This document shows, piece by piece, positions 8,651 through 46,972 of a stretch of 64,000 bases of DNA. The stretch is from NCBI GenBank assembly GCA_904063045.1, contig CAJFCJ010000092.1:7833-71832 (forward strand). Direction: 5' to 3'. Source of the DNA: Dimorphilus gyrociliatus. Its lineage: Eukaryota > Animalia > Annelida. The position numbers were made by a program, and so were the translations under genes. Under the pieces are notes generated by a model that was not told the DNA's origin, searched no databases, and saw only the letters and a list, made by a program, of their open reading frames with translations. Each line of letters begins with the position of its first letter. Position 1 is the first letter of the stretch.

Positions 8651-9609
8651 CTATCCTATCTGAATAGGTCTTCTTTCAGTATTTTCTCTTATCCATTCAA
8701 GTTTACTTGCAACTCTGGCGTAAACTCCTGGGTTTCCTGGTTCGGCACAACCTCTTCCCCATGATGCTAATCCAACTACTTCAAATCGACCGTTGTTGTT
8801 GTAAGCTAGAGGACCACCGGAATCTCCTTGACATATATCTCTTCCGGGCGTTGAGGCGCATACCATGCTTTCATCAATGCTTCCTGGATATGATGCGTTA
8901 CATCTGCTGTTTGACCAAATTTCAACGTTAGTATATCTTAATACATGGGGAATGGGACCACCAGAAACAGTGGCTCCCCATCCAGAAGAAGTAGCTATAA
9001 CATTAACGTAATCAGTGAGTCTGGGAGAACAAGCTGCAGCAACATTATCATTTAATTCTAAAGAATTAGCCAATTGAAGGAGTGATATATCATTTGAGTG
9101 TCTTAATGGGTTTGTGTAGCGCTCGTGGTTGATTACTGTTAAGATATTCGACCTCTGTTCATTATTAAGTGGATTGCTTCTATTGTGAGCCCCAGCAACA
9201 ATAATTAAACCATTAAAAGATCCAATGGGAGTACAATGAGCAGCAGAAAGAGCCCAATTACTGTTGATAACAACTGCACCACAAACATGGCTTTCAAACA
9301 CTCTTAAACTCAACTAAATTATTTTAAAAAATGACATTTCTCATGGAGAAATCTTTCTATAGAATAATTATTTTGTGTCTACTTGATAAGGGAATTCATT
9401 TGCTCTCGCTTCCCAACCTCCAACTATTCTGTCAAATTTATCGCTTCTTTGCTCAGGAGCCGGATTCGGGTATTTGCTTCTCCCGCATTCTGCTAAGATA
9501 AAAATGAAAAATATACGAAAAATGAATGAAAAAAAATGATAAAATGATTATTACAGAGCCATTGGGCAGTTGTATATGAAAGAAACAATAAAATTAGTAG
9601 AGCCTTCAT
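8651..9609 (-). CDS. Secreted trypsin-like serine protease (S1A), exons 9609-9555, 9492-9383, 9313-8651
   Basis: The spliced model gives signal peptide MKALLILLFLSYTTA and activation site R-IVGG. Catalytic motifs AAHC, DISLL and GDSGGP are present, with Asp at the S1 pocket (RDICQGDSGG). All introns are GT-AG and in frame. Confidence 0.95.
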
Positions 9610-34420: not shown

Positions 34421-35438
34421 TATGGTCACCCAGAAAGTTCTCGCCGTTTTGCTGTAGTTTTAAAACGGTACACTGTAGGCCTATATTTTTTCATCATCAA
34501 TAGAAAGTGAATTGATTAATGTACTGTCACTAAAAACTTTCTCAACTTACAATCCCTGGTTCAAAAGTTATTGAGACTTTAGTTGTGGCACAGTATGGAT
34601 GATGGTATAAAGCAGAGAGTAATTATTCAATTTCTTGTATCACAACAAGTTATTGCAATCAATATTCATCAGCAATTGAAAGCTTTTTTTGGTAGTACAC
34701 TTAGTGAAGGTTCAGTAAGAAGGTGGGTTAGAGAATTTAAAGAAGGAAGAACAAATATTCTTGATAAAGACAGACCAGGACGCCCAAGAACAGCCAGTAA
34801 CAATGAAAATATGGACAGAGTTATGGCTCTAATCAGAGATAACATGAGAATAAGCCAGGCTGAGATATCTCAAACATTGAATATAAGCCATTCAGTTGTT
34901 GAAGATTTGATTGCAAGTCTTGGATTAAAAAAGATTGCCTCAAGATGGATTCCCTACCAATTTAATTGGGAACAAAAAGACATAAGGGTGGAAAGGTCTA
35001 CAGAATTCCTAATAAAAGTATGGTGAAGAAGGAGAGAATTCACATATTTGAATAAATTCAGAAATTTACATCAATATTCTAAAGCGATTAAAACAAAGAA
35101 TAAATAGAATCAGGCCTAATAGAGAAGTGATTTTTTTGCAAGACAATGCCAGATCTCATACCAGCCTACAAACAAGCCAATATCTTCAAACAACTGGATG
35201 GGTAATGCTGCCTCATCCAGCCTGCAGCCCAGATCTCGCTCTATCAGACTACTAGCTTTTCTAGAAATTAAAGGACCATCTTTATAGACAAATATTTGAA
35301 AATGATGATGAATTGAAAACAGCAGTAAGGGCATTTTTTAGGTCTGAGCTGCCTGAATACTTTGCCAAAGGAATTGATATGCTTCCAGCCTGGTGGCAAA
35401 CATGCATTGACAAAAATGGGGAATTTGAAGCTAAATAG
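34421..35438 (+). mobile_element. Decayed mariner (DD34D) element
   Basis: HTH region SVRRWVREFKEGRTNILDKDRPGRP, WIPYQF (WVPHEL-like), QDNARSH...CSPDLALSD with 34-residue D-D spacing, and C-terminal WWQTCIDKNGEF. It has internal stops, a deletion spanning the first Asp, and no right TIR was seen. Confidence 0.92.
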
Positions 35439-35684: not shown

Positions 35685-35952
35685 TGGTTTTATATGTGGT
35701 TATCTATTCAAGGTAGTGAATATAAAAATTAAGGTTATTTTTAGAAATCACATTTTGAAAATAGAGTGGTAACTATTCAATTAATTATTATAATTTACAT
35801 AATTATTTAATTTTATCCTATCATTTAAGATATTTAGTATTTTGAATCTCTAATTCATTTCAAGTAATTCACTGACAACTCAGTTTTAGCAAGCCCGGTA
35901 AACGTCATCTTCTAGTATTAGCCTATTACTAATATGTTGTATTAGTACAGAT

Positions 35953-36703
35953 ATGTTGGTTACGTATAATTTCAGTTTTTTTCTTTTGTGTTTCCTATTT
36001 ATGCTATTTACTCAGAGAATTTCCAAAATGTTCTCAGTTGAAGCTGTTTCCGTGAAAAAATATAATAATATCTGCTTAAAAGTACAATGTGAAATAGGTT
36101 ATGAACCTTTACCTTGCTCTGAAGATACTACTATCCATGGTTGTAGAAAATGTCCGTCAGAAACATTCAACGACCAAAGAGGGAGAAGATTTCTCATAAA
36201 GAAGGGAAAAGATTTATTTTGGGAAACAAAGAGCTGCCGTAAAAGGTTTGATAATTAAAATTCGAATATAAACTGGTACACATATTTATTAAATTTACAA
36301 GACGAAAGTGTTTAGGACAATTTGAAATGGTGTTTAAAAAAGGAAGTTTTAAAAGAAATACAGAGTGTAACTGTTCAAAAGAAGGATATGACTATAGTAC
36401 ATTAGAAGAAAAATGTGTAAAAGTAAAAGTTGCTGAGCAAGGTAAGTAGAAAGATGTAATGAATTATGTTTTTTCTCTTTAATTTCAATTGTATTGAATT
36501 TTTTAGAGGACAGTATGTATATTAACTTAATCTCTATACTAGTTACCTTCATCATTTTGGTACTGGTCGCAGTACTTTTTACAAAAAAAAGAAGTAATAG
36601 TTTGTGCAGCATTCATTCATTCATTAAAGTAAATTTATTAGGTCTAAAGATGATTTTTATTAGACAGAGATCTTTCATCTTCTCAACGTTTCCTTCTAAG
36701 TAA
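35953..36703 (+). CDS. TNF-receptor-like type I membrane protein with short cytoplasmic tail; exons 35953-36245, 36302-36441, 36507 to ~36703
   Basis: Signal peptide; CRD-like CEIGYEPLPCSEDTTIHGCRKCPSETFND and KCLGQF...GSFKRNTECNCSKEGY; TM LISILVTFIILVLVAVLFT. Intron positions and phases (2, 1) match the gene at 39307-42063. The exact tail exons are uncertain. Confidence 0.8.
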
Positions 36704-36900
36704 TCATTATAAAATTCTAATGAAAAAATATTAATAAATACGGCTGTTTTTTCAGAAGAAATAAGGAGGACGGTAGATATTCAATACTATCCACAAACTC
36801 ATACATGATTTCACTATCTAAGAATAGCTAACTAACTCCAATTCTCTCAATTTTATACTAAATTTCAACTTCTTTCCAGACATTAAATACTGTTCACGTC

Positions 36901-38481
36901 TCAGAGGAAAATATTGATTGTANACATTTCAAGAACGTCATCGTCAATCCGCTGAAAGACATGATCATTTGAGACAGTTTCGATATTATGATTATTCCAA
37001 TGTAAATGAATTTGTTCATCATCAAAAGTACTTCCTTCAAATTCTATATATAAATTAGACTCCAGTTGAACTCTCCATTCAAAACGCGATGATTGAACTG
37101 AATTACTGCAATTAGCCATTTCAAGCAATATTCTAAATTTTGTACTATTGTAAGAGTGAACTTTGACACCATCCGTGAAATACAATGAAATTTCCTTCTC
37201 ATTTTCAACCTCATCAACGTTGAAACTTTTAAAGAAGGATGTAGGCCTAAAACACCTGCCAAACTGATTATTCTGTTAAAAAGATAAAAAAGATAATAAT
37301 TTTGATTATTATTATTGAAAGAAAAATATGTAAATATTTACCGGATGTTGCGGAATTATTCTTAAAATTGCGCAATCGTTATCGACTATATCGCCATAAA
37401 CATAAAATTTTAGTAGATCTTCGCTTTCTTGATTAACTATAATATATTCACAGAAACTGTTGAATGAAATTTCTATATAACTCTTATGCCATTTAGCAAT
37501 CTCTACTTTATCATATTTTTCCTTTTCCTTATGATAAACGCAAATATTCTTTCTACTCGAAGACAGAAATGGAATTCTAAGTGAACACATTTGTTTAAAC
37601 CTCTGTCCATCGGGTCTACAAACTATAGATTTAACAAACAGTTTCTTAGTCCTACATCGTCTTTTCAACTTTAAAATTTCGTCGACTGTCCAGATTTTAT
37701 CTGTTAATGAAATCTCTACAGGAGATTCTGTTGCATTTTCAGGAAAACTCATTTCAGCGAAAGGACACTTTAACACCATTGACTTCATCTCATACAAACA
37801 ACGACAGGTAGAACTTTGAAAAAAGTCTTTGTTCAAGTCCATGATAATAATTTCTAAAGATTGCAACGAGGATTTTGGTTGCGCCATAGACATTTTTAAA
37901 GATCCTAGCGATTTGGATGAAATACCGGAAGTAGAAAATTCATACTCAAAATTCAATCCTAAAAAGCTATGCAAACCAGTTCTACTAAGAATGATACTAT
38001 CTACTTTTTCTTTTCCAGTAGATGTTTGCAGGTGGAGAAAAAAGCGTAAATTTTCCTCTTCTTTAGGCAATTCAAATTGACGAATGACTATAACATTTGA
38101 AGTAGGCTTTTTGTTTCTTCCTGTACAAATTGTGAAAGTTAAATGGCCATTGATACTCTTATCCGTTACGATGGCCTTTTTCCTTGTAACGAAAAGGAAA
38201 ACTGCAGATGAATGTTGACATATTTCTCCTGTCTCGTTTTGATATTTTATTGGTTCATCATTTCTGTTAATTCTCTTTACGGCTGATTTTTCTAATTTTC
38301 TTTTTCTAACGTTATTAACCTTAGGACGGGATTTGCAGTTAGGACTAATGACTTTGTAAATATTTGTAGTAATTGATTGATTGTTGTCCATGAAATGTGC
38401 CATTTTCGTATTTTCTCTTTTAATCAATATGCCGAACGGTAATAATAGAAATATTACTAGATAAAAGATGATAGAAAACAT
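36901..38481 (-). CDS. Ectodomain-less paralog: N-terminal TM/signal-anchor + ZU5 + UPA-like, death domain absent or disrupted; exons 38481-37342, 37272-36901
   Basis: Collinear similarity to ORFs 40075..41334 and 39307..39987 (LKCPFAEMSFPENATESPVEISL vs LKCPFAQLSIPDDATNSPVEISL; NNQFGRCFRPTSF vs KNQFHTCFVPQSF), with the same phase-0 intron. An in-frame TAA lies 6 nt before the ATG. There is an ambiguous base N at 36923. Confidence 0.75.
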
Positions 38482-38495
38482 GGATTATGCTAAGG

Positions 38496-38498
<3 letters not shown>

Positions 38499-38526
<28 letters not shown>
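38499..38526. repeat. (AG)n microsatellite, which forms the polypyrimidine tract of an acceptor on the minus strand
   Basis: Perfect AG dinucleotide run, followed on the minus strand by cttatccttag. Confidence 0.9.
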
Positions 38527-38529
<3 letters not shown>

Positions 38530-39306
38530 TTTTAGTTTGTACTCACGTATTAAAAAGGCAGCTTTAAAAAGTTAATACAGCGTGTGCTTTAAAATCGAAA
38601 AATTGTGTTATAGGTTGAATTGCCTTCTTCAACAAGAAATTCAAATGATCCTGGACACTTTTGTCAAAATCTATTTAAATAATAAAAACTTTACTAAGAC
38701 CAAGTAAAATTTTGGCTGTTGACATGTTTTTTTTGGTTCATTAGGCCTAAGTGTTTATCTTGTAAAATTTGCAATTCTTTTTAAGTAGTCATTATTTGGC
38801 AGAGAGTCAGTTTGTTCTTGGTGTTTCCACAGAACAAATTCAAAATGGCTGACCTGAACAAAAATAGCGTCTGTATGTCATATAATAAAACAAAAATTAA
38901 TTTGTTCATTTCTTGATTTTCTCATGTCAAATAGTTACAACTATGTCCATAATTTCCCACATAATGGGTACGATTTCACCCGCATTAATTTTTGGCCTAG
39001 TTCTTGACCTATATTTGTGGATTGTGTTGAAAAAAATTATTCCTACACTTACTAGTTTTTGCGGAAGGTGACTGCCAACCTTTTGATGAGATATTTCGGA
39101 AATCAATAACACTTGAGAGTGGAAAAATGCCTTAAAATTTGTCGACTATTCTCTCAAAAGACGCAAGGTTTTTAGGTGGTTATAAACCTCATTATAATAT
39201 GTTTTAGTGATTATAGAAATGTTTCGAACCGGAAGTTTTATTTAATAAAATGACTCACTAGATGGGGATCAATTCATTTATTTATACTAAAATTTATGTC
39301 TGTCTA

Positions 39307-42063
39307 TTAATCAATAATCAATGAAATAGACTCTGGTGGTTTTACCTGGTAATCATTATCATATAAGGTGAATAATTTCAAGAGTTTCTCTACTTGCGGA
39401 TACATGTTAAACTTTGTAACAAGTTCCCTTTCGCTGTATTCTAAACTGTATATTAAATTTTTTCTCGTAATTTTCTTCCAAAGATAATTTCTAATTTCTT
39501 TTAAACAACTAAATCTCGATAGGCGTAAAGATGGAATTCCTGGAAAACTTTTACAGCAATTAAAGAAATTTCCACCTCCAATAACGCAAACAAACAATTT
39601 AAAAGTCATTTCTGAATATTTATCATGCGCCATTTGAAAAATCATTTTTTCAGTAATATAATTAAAATGAACAGAGTGAAGAGGAGAAGTTTCGTTAAAA
39701 GTCGTATCAGATATATTTGTCCAATTCAGCAAAATTGTCTCGAAATCTTCATTATTTTCCCCTAATTGGAGTGAGAAAGTAACCCGTCTCTCAGGATTAA
39801 ATTTTTCAATGATTTCTTCTAAATTGAAAATTTCAGGACTAACCGAATGAGGATAATTCTTACTTTCTTTCTTTTCTATCTCAAAGTAAACGGTTTTAAT
39901 TTGTTCAATCTGTTGACTTGCATCTTTATCATGAGATACTAATGCAATTTTTCTTTCATTTTCCACATCAACATTAAATTTTTTCATAAACGATTGAGGT
40001 ACGAAGCAAGTATGGAATTGATTTTTCTGAAAATGTCCAATTTATCGTTTTATATTCATAGTTTTAATAAATTTTCATTTCCCTACCTGAATTTGAGGAG
40101 AAATTTTTAAAATCGCCTTATCTTCGTCAACTTTATCACCGTAGACATAGAATTTTATCATATTTCTTCCTTCGTTATTGACGATAATATATTCGTTAAA
40201 GTCAGTAATATGAATTTCTATAAAGCTAGCATCCCAGATCACATTTTCAACTTTTAGCAGACATTTATCATTTTTATGATATACAGAAACACGTTCAGGC
40301 ATTGAAGACAGAAATGGAATCTTTAGCATGCACACTTTGTTAAATCTTTGTTCATCTGCTTTACATATTAGATGTTTAATAAATATTTGATCATCATTTC
40401 CTTTTCTAATATTATCTATATCAGGAATAGCTTCGTCGTCTTTGTAGATTTTCTCATGTAATGAAATCTCTACCGGAGAATTTGTCGCGTCGTCGGGAAT
40501 ACTTAATTGAGCAAATGGACATTTTAAAGTAGTTGATATCTTATCATACCAGAAATGAAAACTAGGATTTTCGAGTAGATCTTTATTCAAATCGATATCA
40601 ATAGTTTTAAAATTATCCACTGACGATTTCAGTAGATTTATTGATAGTTTTAACGAATCTCGTGAGCCATCTGATCCGCTAACATTGTATTTGCGAATAT
40701 TGAAATTGTATTGAAACGTTTCGACTAATGATAGATCAAGGCGAGTTCTATCAATAGAGATTTCTTGTGTATCATATTCTTCATTCGATATTTGCCGATT
40801 GATTGAAAAGACTAAATTTTCAGCAGTACTGGATAATTTAAAACTACGAATGGCTATGATGTTGGATAATTGCATATTTTCTGTACAAACGTTAAATGTT
40901 AATTTTCCCTTAACAGAACCATTTTCCTCAACAGTCAATTCATTTGTAACAAACAGAAGAACTTGAAGATCAAATTTGCTCTTTTCCATTATAAAAGTTT
41001 CTTTAAAATCAAAGAAATGAATTATTGGGATAATGTCATCAGTCTTGGATTGAAGTTTTACACATATACCAATCTTTTTCTGCAGTTCAGAACTAGTTTG
41101 ACAAGTGACAGTAATTTTCTGACAATCTTGTTGAAATTCACTTTTCATGCTAACTGTTAAAAAGTCTTGGTCAAGATATGATTTAACATCGTAAAGAAAA
41201 ATTCCAGACGAATGCCGAAATATGCCGTTATTTTCTGATAAATCAATATTCAGAGTCTTTTTAACAATTTTACTCCCATTGGAAATGTTTGACAATTCTA
41301 TATCTTTCAGCAGAGATTGGCTTTCGCCGATCATCGAGGCTTTAAAAAAGGAACTATGTTTTTAAAAATTATTATAGGAAGATATTCACCTTCTCCTCCT
41401 TCTTCCATCATTGAGGTTTCAAGAGATTTGCATCTGCACAATTTTTTTTTCGCTCTTGCATAATATAAAAACAAGAAAACCATAAAAACCACAAATAATA
41501 TCATGAGAAGTAAAATGATTAAAATTTGATAAAGGTGTGTTGCTGTTGAATTAAAAAGATGAAAAAACGAGTTTGAGCTATAAGAATATGTTCAACTTAC
41601 ACGATTCATTATTGTTGTCTTCCACTTGCAGGCATTTGTTTAGATCTATCCTATATCTGTAATTGCTGTTTGTACAACTGCACAAAGTGTCTTCCTTGGA
41701 ATTTCCCTCTTTGAGGACAGTCTCAAATAATCCATTACAAAGTCGTCTATTTCATCAATTGAACAATGAAATCTATTTACGTTTTACGTGTCTTTATTTT
41801 ACAAACCTTTCACGACATTTTCGAATTAGCCAATAAGATTTGGATAATTCATCAATTAAGATTCTACTTCCTTGTATGTCGTTAAAATATCCGGGTCTAC
41901 ATTCTCTGCACGAATTGCCAATACTGTTATTGTTGCAGGGAGACGGTTCAAAACCTACATCGCAGACTATTTGTTGGCAATTTCCTATTTTTCTTGAATT
42001 GGCTGCGACTGATTGAAATTGAATTCTTACTAAATGTATCCATAGTAAAACAGCCGGAGACAT
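39307..42063 (-). CDS. TNFR-like ectodomain + TM + ZU5/UPA + death-domain-like receptor, 842 aa; exons 42063-41807, 41746-41601, 41542-41390, 41339-40087, 40026-39307
   Basis: Exon lengths 257+146+153+1253+720 = 2529 nt, stop-free with GT-AG introns. It has a signal peptide, CRDs CDVGFEPSPC...CRECRPGYFND and LCNG...GNSKEDTLCSC, and TM ILIILLLMILFVVFMVFLFLYY. The ZU5-like segment is LSIPDDATNSPVEISL...CKADEQRFNKVCMLKIPF...DFNEYIIV, and the death-domain-like end is YLWKKITRKNLIYSLEYSERELVTKF. Confidence 0.85.
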
Positions 42064-42354
42064 TTCAATATAATAATTTAGACATCAAAAATAAGAATTA
42101 ATGTCTGTCTCTTATAACCATTGAATTTATGGTTGATATTGAACAGAAGTAACAATTACTGCGATTCATATGAGTGGTTATAATTCAATTTTTAGGGAGC
42201 ATATATTATTCTCATAAATACTATTGTAATTTATTAATTTGGAATCTCCCTAAATATTTTTGTCTAGTGTTTTTTTTTTATTATTGTGAAAAGCAATACT
42301 TGATTATTCAAATTTAACTTTTAAACCTTTTCCAACATCCTTTAGTAAGTCAGT

Positions 42355-42600
42355 AGGGTTTTCTTTCAGCTCTACTTCCTCATTTATCGTTAAAGCTTCG
42401 TGGCTTACATTTTACGCAAGAGTCCCAAGAGCTATTGGTGATGGTTTATAACCAATTTTGCAACACAACTTCTGTCCAGTTGTGATCATTTTTGTTTTCC
42501 AAACAAAACTTTGTTGCTGATGGTAAATATCTTGATGGTATCTGTAGCGCCATCTGTTATTAAATAAAGTCATAATAAACAAACTACTGGTTATAAACAT
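42355..42600 (-). pseudogene. Pseudogenised TNFR-like first exon
   Basis: KLCCKIGYKPSP [frameshift] NSSWDSCVKCKPRSFNDK*GSR aligns with QIVCDVGFEPSPCNNNSIGNSCRECRPGYFNDIQGSR of the neighbouring gene. Confidence 0.75.
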
Positions 42601-43860: not shown

Positions 43861-44722
43861 TTACATTAAACTACTGTTCTTTCCATTCTATAATATCCCT
43901 AAAAATATAATTATTGCAATTTTATTAAAATATATATAGGACTACTAACTGTATCTCCAAACATGAATATTTTTGTACCATAATAGGCTTTAGCAGCAAT
44001 ATAACCCCAATTTTCATACAACTTTTTAGCTCTTTCATTGTGATGTGCAACTAACAAACATACTTTCTATAAAGAAAGAAGATGAATTTTTAAATAATCA
44101 ACTAAGGAAATCTAACTTTTAATCCTCTGCCTTTTGCTTCTTCATCAGCAGCATTTAAGAGAATTTTCCCGATACCTTTGCCCCTGCACTGGCTATCAAC
44201 AACTAAATGATCAATAATACATTCATCATCCTTCATTGTATATAAATATTCCAACATTCCAGAAGAGAGAATAACTTTAAATACAGATTTGAATGATATA
44301 TCTGCACGATAATTGCCATATTTCATTGGTTTAACACTAGATATTTTTTTGTAAGAAAGTATTATGTTCATTCATTTTAAAGTGAAAAAAAAATGTACAA
44401 ACTGTGGATATTTCATTTGACAAATTCCAACAATTTTTCCATTTTCTTCTGCAACTAATGTATTTGGAATTACTGTCTCAGCAACTCTAAAATCGTGAAT
44501 GAATAATTTTCTGACTTCATCCATCTCTTCTTCTCTGAATGTATATTTCCATTTAAAAGGAAAACCTTGTAAAAATAAATCCACAATTCTCTCAATGTCA
44601 TCATCATTTGCCTGTCTGACTGTAATATTAGGATTATCTATAATCTTATTGGATTTTACTATTTGACAATTTTCATCAATATCCAATTGCACAGTTTTGA
44701 AAAACAATTTAAAAAACCACAT
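43861..44722 (-). CDS. GNAT-family N-acetyltransferase, copy A (4 exons)
   Basis: ITVRQANDDDIERI, VAEENGKIVG, motif A VDSQCRGKGIGKILL, and motif B NERAKKLYENWGY in an unlisted exon. GT-AG introns are in frame, with a stop at 43861-43863. The start could lie further upstream. Confidence 0.88.
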
Positions 44723-45310
44723 TTTGTCTAAAATCTTAATATTTTTGGTGAAAATATCTTTGAAAATGTCTTCTTTAAAAAGTTTGGATACAACTGACTA
44801 CTATTTCAAATTTATAGCCAATAGCAGTTATATGGTACAGTTCGCTTTTTTCAGGTCAACCAAATCAATAGAGCTTGATAGGCCTAGTAATTTTATGACT
44901 AATACTCACGTGCCTACTTAATATTCTATATATCTCGTTTTATAAATTATTTTAGAATATATATTTCTTTGATTTTATACTCTTTTTTTGTATAGTGGAA
45001 GAAAAGGATTAGCAAAGATATGGACAATACAGTTTCTGTTGATTATTTAAACATATTTCTTACATTTTTATCAGAATTCGTAAATTTCAAAAATAGGATA
45101 TCTGGCACTTTTCACGATTTTTTCAGAAAAAACGTATTTTTTGTTATTTAAATAGTAAAATACAAAAACTTAATTAATTGAATATGTTGATTACAAAGTC
45201 ACAATTTGACATGTCGAATTATTGGATTGTAAAATTAATGTTAAGGAAAATAATTTTAATTAATATAGAAAATAGCTGGGTGTTCAAAAATAGGTTACCT
45301 GTACTATATA

Positions 45311-46972
45311 TAGTGGTCGACAAAAAAACCCGGACACCATAAATTTTGATAGGCCAAACATTATAAATCTTTTTCACCAGCAAAAAAGATTTTTTCTTTT
45401 ATTTTTCAGGTATAAAATAGTAGTTTAAAGTTTGATATATACGTGAGTTTCTTTTGAATATCATTTAGATAAGTTTTCACATAAGTGTTTTTGTTTTCTT
45501 ATTATCCATTTTTTGATGATTTTTTTTCTTATTTGGCCATGAGACATTATTACTTGGACGATGGTTTGGGGATTAATATTTTTATTATTTTTGAATATGA
45601 CAACCCTCATTTGCAATACATTTGCTAATCCTACCTCCCATCCCTGCATATAACTTTGGTAGCAAGTCAGGATTTTGACTTATAACCTGGTATGAACATT
45701 TTTTTATTATCCCCCACAGTTCATCCCCAGATTGAAATTGTGCCCCATTGTAAACTAAATTTTTTGTCAGGTGCCACATATTTTCTATAGGGCTCAGGTC
45801 AGGGCTCTTTGCTGGCCAATCAATTGGATTGATACCATTCATTCTAAAGGCCCTCCTAGTTGCTCTTGCTGTGTGGCAGCCTGTGTTATCTTGTTGGAAG
45901 ATGTAATTCCTGCCCATTTTGAGTGATATCTCTTCAATGACAGGAAGAACATCTTCCACAACAAAACAGCTATAATTTTGGGCAGTCAATTTTGTGACTT
46001 ATCCTCCAAACTTCAAATACCCCATCTGAGGTTATTAATCCCCACACCATCACTCCACCTCTTCCCATATTTTTAGTGACTCTAAAATTTTTTTTCACCA
46101 TCTTTTGTCCATGTCCTGAAATCATCAGGCCCACTCAGAGAGAATCTGGCCTCATCTGTGAAAATCACTCTTGACCAGTCCAGATTTTCAGCAATTGTTT
46201 TGAGGCAGTATTCTTTTCTTCTTGCTCAATCCTTAGGTGTGAGATCAACTCTCTGTCTAATCCTTTTATAATTATAATTTTGCCTCTTCATCTCTCTCTG
46301 AATGGTCTTGAGACTCACATAGACCTCTAATTCTGCTAAGACCTTTCCTGCTGTCACCCTTTCCTTATTTCTCTTAAGTCTCTTTACTATTCTTTTTATC
46401 CTCACTATGTCTCTTTCTGTTAGCTTCTTTGTACAACCCCTGTTCTCTTGTTGTGGTGGCTGATATCTCAAAATGTCACTAATGGTAGATGGTGCCATTC
46501 CCAAAGCCCTTGCAGTTGCCCTAATTTTTCCCAATTCTTCGTATTTCTTAAATACTAGATTCCTAACCTCTTTACCCCATGCCATAATTAAGTAAATAGA
46601 ATTTAAAGTTAACTACAGTAATTAAAATAGATCAAAAGTGATTACTTAACTTTGAAAATTAGTTTGGTCAAAAAAAATTTCTGTTTGGGATGTTAATTTG
46701 AATCCAAAACTGGAAACAAAATGGATGTGTGGTTAATAACGTCTCACAGCCAAATATAGAAAAAATTAATTAAAATTAGTAAAAATGTTTTTCCTATTAA
46801 TATTCACAATATGATAATTTTGTCATTTTTTTTCAATATTACAGAAATATAACCCTTTATCAATGTAAATTGCCTAAAAAAACTAATTTCAAACTAAAAA
46901 ACATATTTTTGGGGTGATTTAAAAATTGGCCTATCAAAATTTACAGTGTCCGGGTTTTTTAGTCCACCACTA
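45311..46972 (-). mobile_element. Tc1/Tc3-like DD34E element, full length but with inactivated transposase
   Basis: ~47-bp imperfect TIRs (tagtggtcgacaaaaaaacccggacacc... / ...gtgtccgggttttttagtccaccacta) with TA flanks. HTH, IFTDEARF, and QQDN...SPDLSPIEN with 34-residue spacing. Premature TGA at 46226 plus a frameshift. Confidence 0.93.

Follow-up and report, generated by a model that had tools for sequence, protein, structure and literature searches.

The stretch of DNA analyzed here, 64,000 nucleotides of contig CAJFCJ010000092.1 from the annelid Dimorphilus gyrociliatus (hereafter the window; the position in the record is the window position plus 7832), is AT-rich (~29% GC) and contains, at positions 35953-42600, a cluster of genes of a putative single-pass receptor family. 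An earlier note on this DNA, made from the letters alone, had described the cluster as a complete receptor gene (here, gene (i)), a separate gene for an ectodomain with a membrane anchor (gene (ii)), a separate gene for an anchored cytoplasmic tail (gene (iii)) and a pseudo-exon (piece (iv)), and had considered whether genes (ii) and (iii) add up to one receptor. The published annotation calls only gene (i) and is blank between this gene and a gene for a 651-amino acid protein further on; thus, genes (ii) and (iii) are unannotated on this contig although both are spliced and expressed. The assembly was haploidised with HaploMerger2 and scaffolded with SSPACE-LongRead (PMC7854359). For the present analysis, contigs from one DNA run (X1) and from two RNA runs of different studies (X2 and X3) were placed on window positions 35900-41899. 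In both RNA studies, genes (i), (ii) and (iii) are all transcribed and spliced, with similar contig depth, in agreement with the co-expression that the earlier note had proposed to check. The introns of these genes agree with the 50-70 nucleotides given for D. gyrociliatus introns in the genome paper (PMC7854359).

Gene (i) (39307-42063, minus strand) consists of five exons, namely 42063-41807, 41746-41601, 41542-41390 (encoding the membrane anchor), 41339-40087 (the large exon) and 40026-39307, and its spliced product, derived by eye, is identical to the 842-amino acid database protein DgyrCDS14866 (P0002). All four introns are represented by CT..AC joints in the RNA runs and none in the DNA run. 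The complete receptor gene of the earlier note is accordingly confirmed as a gene, but the domain labels that had been attached to it (TNFR, ZU5, UPA and death domain) all remain below the Pfam threshold. Second, heavily substituted versions of parts of gene (i), at 40486-40836 and 41615-41698, occur in both DNA and RNA contigs at approximately equal depth, and a variant of gene (iii) is found near 38159 (the reverse complement of the loose end reads ...CIDGHLTFTL); these second versions may represent divergent alleles or, alternatively, extra copies of very recent origin, in either case absent from the haploid assembly.

The family to which gene (i) belongs has few detectable members. An exhaustive phmmer search of 1.84 billion representative sequences with a 419-amino acid large-exon query matched only P0002 and one other protein, P0001 (DgyrCDS14392, 437 amino acids), and word-indexed protein searches yielded the same two; the products of genes (ii) and (iii) are absent from the protein collection. 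P0001 is encoded on a different contig, CAJFCJ010000035.1, in a locus hereafter termed L001 (8759-11381 in L001 coordinates). This locus encompasses the full architecture, with exon 1 at 8759-9042 and exon 2 from position 9113, as well as the large and the last exons. In contrast, P0001 as annotated begins in the middle of the large exon, the open head exons upstream having been omitted by the annotation. Ten cysteines are common to the heads of genes (i) and (ii), and nine of these are kept in L001. The L001 head lacks the tenth cysteine and has an anchor of only ~13 hydrophobic residues, so that the head may be in the course of being lost from this copy, too.

The paralogs are highly diverged. 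Synonymous sites are saturated (proportion of differing synonymous sites, pS, 0.63-0.76), and the proportion of differing nonsynonymous sites (pN) ranges from 0.33 to 0.40 for the tails and from 0.43 to 0.53 for the heads, where two of the pairs are approximate because one head sequence was spliced one base off. In terms of amino acid identity, all pairs of heads fall within 32-37%, and the tails within 38-46%, with 46% between gene (iii) and L001 and 38% between genes (iii) and (i). The ratio of nonsynonymous to synonymous substitution rates (dN/dS) between the paralog tails is about 0.3-0.4, a figure that is obtained with saturated synonymous sites and, being an average over paralogs, gives no date for the truncations; the lineage-specific dN/dS is uninformative owing to the same saturation. 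Despite this divergence, frames of more than 1.4 kilobases (kb) in gene (iii) and ~0.6 kb in gene (ii) have stayed open, which argues against the view that these genes are two neutrally decaying halves.

Gene (iii) is also a minus-strand gene and is located directly downstream of gene (i). Its coding exons, 38456-37342 (the large exon, with the ZU5-like region) and 37272-36924 (which runs on into an assembly gap discussed below), maintain an intact frame and are spliced in RNA (joint 37272/37342). Upstream of the coding part, a 124-nucleotide non-coding leader exon (38547-38670, minus strand) is spliced to a further upstream leader exon, the 3' end of which is represented by 39053-39112 (minus strand, with a GTAAGT donor after 39053) and sits in the downstream flank of gene (i); the joint, 38670/39053, is a CT..AC joint that is seen in both X2 and X3. 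The leader exon is separated from the large exon by a 90-nucleotide leader intron (38457-38546, minus strand; GTGAGT donor, CTAG acceptor) that holds a (GA)n repeat and an ATG at 38481. The evidence for the removal of this intron comes from an X2 contig (record 11) in which 389 nucleotides matching 38068-38456 are joined to 124 unplaced nucleotides, the exact length of the leader exon; in general, 38456 is the exact point at which the gene (iii) RNA contigs stop or change, right after the CTAG acceptor, and, at the (GA)n repeat inside the intron, one joint of X2 was discarded. The repeat is a microsatellite of ~50 nucleotides (38487-38538), at which both DNA and RNA contigs break. Trans-splicing at 38456 was considered and rejected: the 124-nucleotide exon accounts for the contig exactly, and the fact that no spliced leader is reported in the D. 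gyrociliatus genome paper (PMC7854359) also counts against it. Within the other, 382-nucleotide leader intron of gene (iii), a segment of ~105 nucleotides (38731-38835) has an X1 depth of 1470 compared to ~110-130 nearby, with contigs diverging on both sides, and looks like a short high-copy repeat.

The 124-nucleotide leader exon is a relic of exon 2 of the family, the exon for the second cysteine-rich module. In one frame, it reads QKCPGSFEFLVEEGNSTYNTIFRF followed by a stop, to be compared with the family exon-2 peptides QRCIGPFQVVLREGNSTDDTICGC of L001, RLCNGLFETVLKEGNSKEDTLCSC of gene (i) and RKCLGQFEMVFKKGSFKRNTECNC of gene (ii); the C-x-C motif has become F-R-F, and the relic contains stops and is two cysteines short. 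When the whole 850-nucleotide interval between genes (i) and (iii) was searched with the three exon-2 peptides, 2, 1 and 0 out of 1000 shuffles, respectively, attained the observed score, and the nucleotide identity of the leader exon to exon 2 of L001 is 58.5%. Given that gene (iii) possesses an exon-2 relic of its own and that the RNA joints 39053/38670 and 38547/38456 tie it, on the minus strand, to the flank of gene (i), we conclude that gene (iii) is a tandem paralog of gene (i), the head of which decayed in place, rather than the detached tail of gene (ii).

These observations bear directly on the possibility that one paralog underwent fission into a two-chain receptor, with gene (ii) providing the ligand-binding chain and gene (iii) the signaling chain, each with its own anchor. 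In the assembly, the two genes roughly sum to one receptor, and there is a hydrophobic stretch in each of the genomic frames, which is what had suggested fission in the first place. The two genes are, however, not complementary: gene (iii) has its own head-exon relic as well as its own anchor-like segment and is spliced from exons in the gene (i) flank, gene (ii) has its own anchor, and the ATG from which the gene (iii) anchor would be translated is intronic in the RNA contigs. Furthermore, the head and tail identities do not pair gene (ii) with gene (iii), considering that the tails of (iii) are 46% and 38% identical to those of the other two paralogs and all head pairs are similarly distant (32-37%). 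Fission thus appears extremely unlikely.

The nature of the gene (iii) product follows from the structure of its leader. The ATG at 38481, where the hydrophobic N-terminus starts, falls within the intron that the RNA contigs lack; once this intron is removed, the upstream frame of the mRNA is closed by a stop and contains no AUG, and the first in-frame AUG is at 38403-38401 (MAHFMDNN...). With this change of start, the 19-residue hydropathy maximum drops from 2.78 to 1.26. Compared to the paralogs, gene (iii) also lacks ~60-80 residues near the beginning of the large exon. Most likely, then, the product is a cytosolic tail-only protein that would start at MAHFMDNN, such that the tail-without-ectodomain gene of the earlier note is retained as an intact, spliced tail but loses the anchor. 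There is a parallel in vertebrates: NRH2/NRADD is an expressed paralog of p75NTR that has no ectodomain and keeps the membrane anchor and the cytoplasmic tail. Similarly to NRADD, gene (iii) is an expressed paralog that lost the ligand-binding modules and kept the cytoplasmic tail; in contrast to the situation in NRADD, splicing removes the ATG for the anchor from the RNA contigs of gene (iii), and the two are homologous by no test applied here.

The C-terminal end of gene (iii) and its apparent tail-to-tail junction with gene (ii) coincide with a single N at 36923, the only one in the whole window, which represents an assembly or scaffold break. One DNA contig (X1 record 1, 2526 nucleotides) matches 35900-36922 and then extends 1139 unplaced nucleotides beyond 36922, and another (X1 record 2, 1699 nucleotides) matches from 36924 and has 590 unplaced nucleotides before that position. 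The RNA contigs behave in the same manner: on the gene (iii) side, X2 record 10 and X3 record 15 match 38032-37342 and 37272-36924 and continue with 591-592 unplaced nucleotides beyond 36924, and on the gene (ii) side, X2 record 9 (3503 nucleotides) contains the gene (ii) exons, including 36756-36922, followed by ~2572 unplaced nucleotides. The 30-nucleotide loose end before 36924 does not occur anywhere in the window. Because DNA and RNA contigs on either side run into sequence that is absent from the window, the N marks a real discontinuity. Scaffolders of the SSPACE-LongRead kind leave a single N at joins that could not be merged. The tail-to-tail arrangement of genes (ii) and (iii) is, therefore, not confirmed as a junction in the DNA, and it is unsafe to read 'head-only' and 'tail-only' genes from this assembly: the one-letter N conceals several kilobases, which we infer to hold the 3' part of gene (ii) and the end of gene (iii).

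For gene (iii), the sequence on the far side of the break can be read in part. The loose end beyond 36924 (minus strand) continues the frame (...DDDVLEM-LANSCNDNMT), and this extension, where the C-terminal domain starts, aligns to NMASVCTAEMI of P0001 and to QMAHDKYSEMT of P0002. Because the frame carries on across the break, in frame and with family-like residues, the 'missing death domain' of gene (iii) is an artefact of the gap; the stop that follows right after the N in the window stems from the wrong side of the join.

An inversion, either real or introduced by misassembly, that broke one paralog into a plus-strand head and a minus-strand tail, both decaying, would be compatible with the convergent layout, which is what inverting the 3' part of a plus-strand gene is expected to produce, and with the location of the assembly break exactly at the junction. 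Also in its favor, a frame at 34583-35026, ~1 kb upstream of gene (ii), resembles, judging from its translation, the N-terminus of a mariner-type transposase. Nevertheless, this scenario seems improbable: both frames are intact in spite of the saturated synonymous sites, and both are expressed; a head relic is present in gene (iii) itself, the 5' exons of which are contiguous with gene (i); and the contigs at the break enter different unassembled sequences rather than each other.

Gene (ii) (35953-36922, plus strand) comprises the exons 35953-36245, 36302-36441, 36507-36699 (alternatively, 36507-36593 and 36664-36699) and 36756 onward; GT..AG joints in both RNA runs confirm exons 1-3, and the 3503-nucleotide X2 contig contains the exons of the gene. 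The encoded protein has a signal peptide and a strong hydrophobic anchor (19-residue hydropathy maximum 3.11), and the two cysteine-rich exons carry all 10 cysteines of the family; these features are kept although the gene is only 32-34% identical to its paralogs. Two isoforms are seen. In isoform A (X2), the splice 36699/36756 removes a genomic stop, and the 233-amino acid product terminates at 36829-36831; in isoform B (X3), an additional splice, 36593/36664, shifts the frame and, if the contig is read straight on, yields a product of 202 amino acids with the stop at 36806-36808. Both isoforms terminate 30-65 residues past the anchor. However, the end of the X3 contig falls precisely on 36772, in front of a GT and with the isoform-B frame still open, which is the pattern of a used donor, so that a longer gene (ii) product is possible; a hypothetical splice from 36772 to an acceptor at 36880 would hold the frame open to the N, over a stretch of 35 residues. 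The ectodomain and anchor ascribed to this gene in the earlier note are both borne out, but its short tail may be only apparent, the 3' part being located beyond the break. We consider the chances slightly better than even that the 2.57 kb on the far side of the break contain a tail for gene (ii).

The properties of genes (ii) and (iii) raise the question of whether the cluster is a regulated set in which gene (i) signals, gene (ii) is a membrane-bound decoy and gene (iii) is a tail-only modulator or adaptor. These candidate roles would be compatible with an origin by duplication and decay. Several of the above observations fit such a set, in particular, the similar depth of spliced transcripts of all three genes in two independent studies, the isoforms of gene (ii) that end shortly after the anchor, the conservation of its ectodomain features and anchor at 32-34% identity, and the tail frame of gene (iii) that is intact despite synonymous saturation. 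Other observations do not: the gene (ii) transcript goes ~2.57 kb past the stops, and the contig that ends at the 36772 donor does so with an open frame; the short tails of gene (ii) are unrelated to the family and resemble read-through; and neither gene (ii) nor gene (iii) is called in the published annotation. The decoy and modulator reading is further weakened because the 3' part of gene (ii) and the end of gene (iii) fall in the gap. Altogether, a regulated set appears rather unlikely. The more specific version, a working three-component module with gene (i) as the receptor, the short isoforms of gene (ii) as the decoy and gene (iii) as a ZU5-type tail-only protein whose anchored or soluble form would be set by retention or removal of the leader intron, is still somewhat less likely.

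The obvious point of comparison is the TRAIL system, where the decoys DcR1 and DcR2 (TNFRSF10C and TNFRSF10D), which kept the ectodomain and the anchor and have no working death tail, adjoin the signaling receptors DR4 and DR5. As in that system, clustered paralogs encode cysteine-rich receptors, and the gene (ii) isoforms have the shape of a decoy. Unlike the TRAIL decoys, the D. gyrociliatus proteins show no detectable sequence relationship to these receptors and no Pfam TNFR_c6 match, and the short tail of gene (ii) may be an effect of isoforms or of the gap, considering that the transcript runs 2.57 kb further.

Piece (iv) (42331-42600, minus strand) is a decayed exon 1 of the family, as indicated by nucleotide alignment and shuffling. 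It aligns to exon 1 from the ATG through the conserved donor and keeps a leader-like start and part of the cysteine-rich module; the damage consists of deletions, one frameshift and an in-frame TGA. When piece (iv) was compared at the protein level with the exon-1 peptides of the family, 0, 5 and 0 out of 1000 shuffles attained the observed score, so the designation as a pseudo-exon holds. A candidate for a remnant of exon 2 downstream of piece (iv) was tested and found not significant.

The domain identities are less clear-cut than the gene structures. For the heads of gene (i), gene (ii) and L001, there is no Pfam match to TNFR_c6 (PF00020) at E-values up to 10, only weak matches to laminin-EGF; the language-model neighbours in the Atlas are TNFR_c6 clusters (score 0.81, structural TM 0.55-0.61 depending on the query), which we treat as leads only, as we do the other Atlas neighbours. 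In the tails, ZU5 (PF00791) is the top Pfam match in three paralogs, over a homologous stretch and in the same register (profile positions ~20-90 of 97), with 12.3 bits for gene (i), 16.4 for P0001 and 14.0 for gene (iii), below the cut-off of 21; the Atlas neighbours are ZU5/UPA/Death, FIIND and DTHD1 clusters (0.83-0.86). For UPA (PF17217 and PF17809), no Pfam match is found in residues 600-750 of P0002, where the Atlas neighbours are the sole support, and at the C-terminus there is no match to the Death domain (PF00531), the Atlas neighbours being Death clusters (0.83). An AlphaFold2 model of the 108 C-terminal residues of P0002 (735-842), built from a two-row alignment, contains five helices at a mean predicted local distance difference test (pLDDT) of 46, too low for a fold search, and the single-sequence model of the 419-residue large exon (pLDDT 33) is unusable. 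Among the PDB sequences, neither phmmer nor a three-sequence profile found anything relevant. We therefore use the labels TNFR-like, ZU5-like and helical C-terminal domain, which are moderately supported by these sub-threshold similarities; the UPA and death-domain identities are unproven.

With these qualifications, the tail of the family is reminiscent of the ZU5-UPA-death-domain supramodule of UNC5, PIDD1 and ankyrins and of the FIIND of NLRP1 and CARD8, in view of the top ZU5 matches, the Atlas neighbours and the predicted helical character of the C-terminal 100 residues. It differs from the UNC5/PIDD1/ankyrin supramodule in that the matches are at 12-16 bits compared to the cut-off of 21, there are no matches to UPA, Death or the PDB, and the models are of low confidence. 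To our knowledge, the known ZU5-UPA-death families do not combine such a tail with a TNFR-like ectodomain, and a full-text search of a library of papers, with four terms, did not find this combination described.

Taken together, the gene structures, the spliced transcripts, the assembly break, the relics of exons and the frame of gene (iii) that extends past the break, all of which were observed, point to a cluster of old duplicates, some of them decayed, of an orphan single-pass receptor family of D. gyrociliatus, an interpretation to which we assign a probability of roughly 0.65. Under this scenario, the ectodomain of a full member would be small, cysteine-rich and TNFR-like, and the cytoplasmic part, beyond a membrane anchor, would comprise a large ZU5-like region and a C-terminal domain of helical character. 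Gene (i) would be the intact member and gene (iii) a tandem paralog directly downstream of it, in which the ectodomain exons presumably decayed into spliced non-coding leader exons and the tail frame stayed intact; gene (ii) would be a separate, convergent paralog with its 3' part in the break, and piece (iv) all that is left of a fourth copy. That one receptor seems to be split into head and tail genes results from the gap and from the decayed head of gene (iii).

Several findings weigh against this scenario of duplication and decay. A tail for gene (ii) within the gap is putative, and both isoforms of this gene stop inside the window; the 35-residue open frame before the N was examined as a candidate juxtamembrane region of the family and rejected, given that 1138 of 5000 shuffles reach its score. 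The adjacency of gene (ii) to gene (iii) and their relative orientation are those of a scaffold join. For gene (iii), an exon-1 relic was sought upstream of 39053, and the similarity was not significant. The X3 contig stops exactly at 38456, as if an unspliced form with the ATG at 38481 coexists, which suggests that such a form is also produced; an anchored protein, which would require intron retention, may therefore exist as well. Finally, gene (iii) has 63 unique substitutions compared to 31 in L001, its closest paralog (chi-square 10.9), and this excess could reflect relaxed constraint.

Two features outside the cluster or the runs discussed above were recorded as well. At about 43866-45917, an annotated gene encodes a single product with Pfam matches to both a DDE_3 transposase and a GNAT acetyltransferase. 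In a run from 2024 (X6), the differences from the window at 41761-41860 are all G>A, which looks like the signature of a library prepared by bisulfite or enzymatic conversion and not like variation in sequence.

The practical value of this analysis lies in the correction of the head-only/tail-only reading. Beyond that, it provides an example, of modest biological value, of how an orphan receptor family of immune type has duplicated and decayed in a miniature annelid. In gene (iii), former ectodomain exons persist as spliced non-coding leaders, which represents a clear intermediate stage of domain loss. Should the truncated products turn out to be functional, this would amount to an independent origin of decoy and modulator paralogs; and if the three genes indeed form a working module, a spiralian orphan family would have independently evolved a logic of decoys and modulators comparable to the one known from the death receptors of vertebrates.

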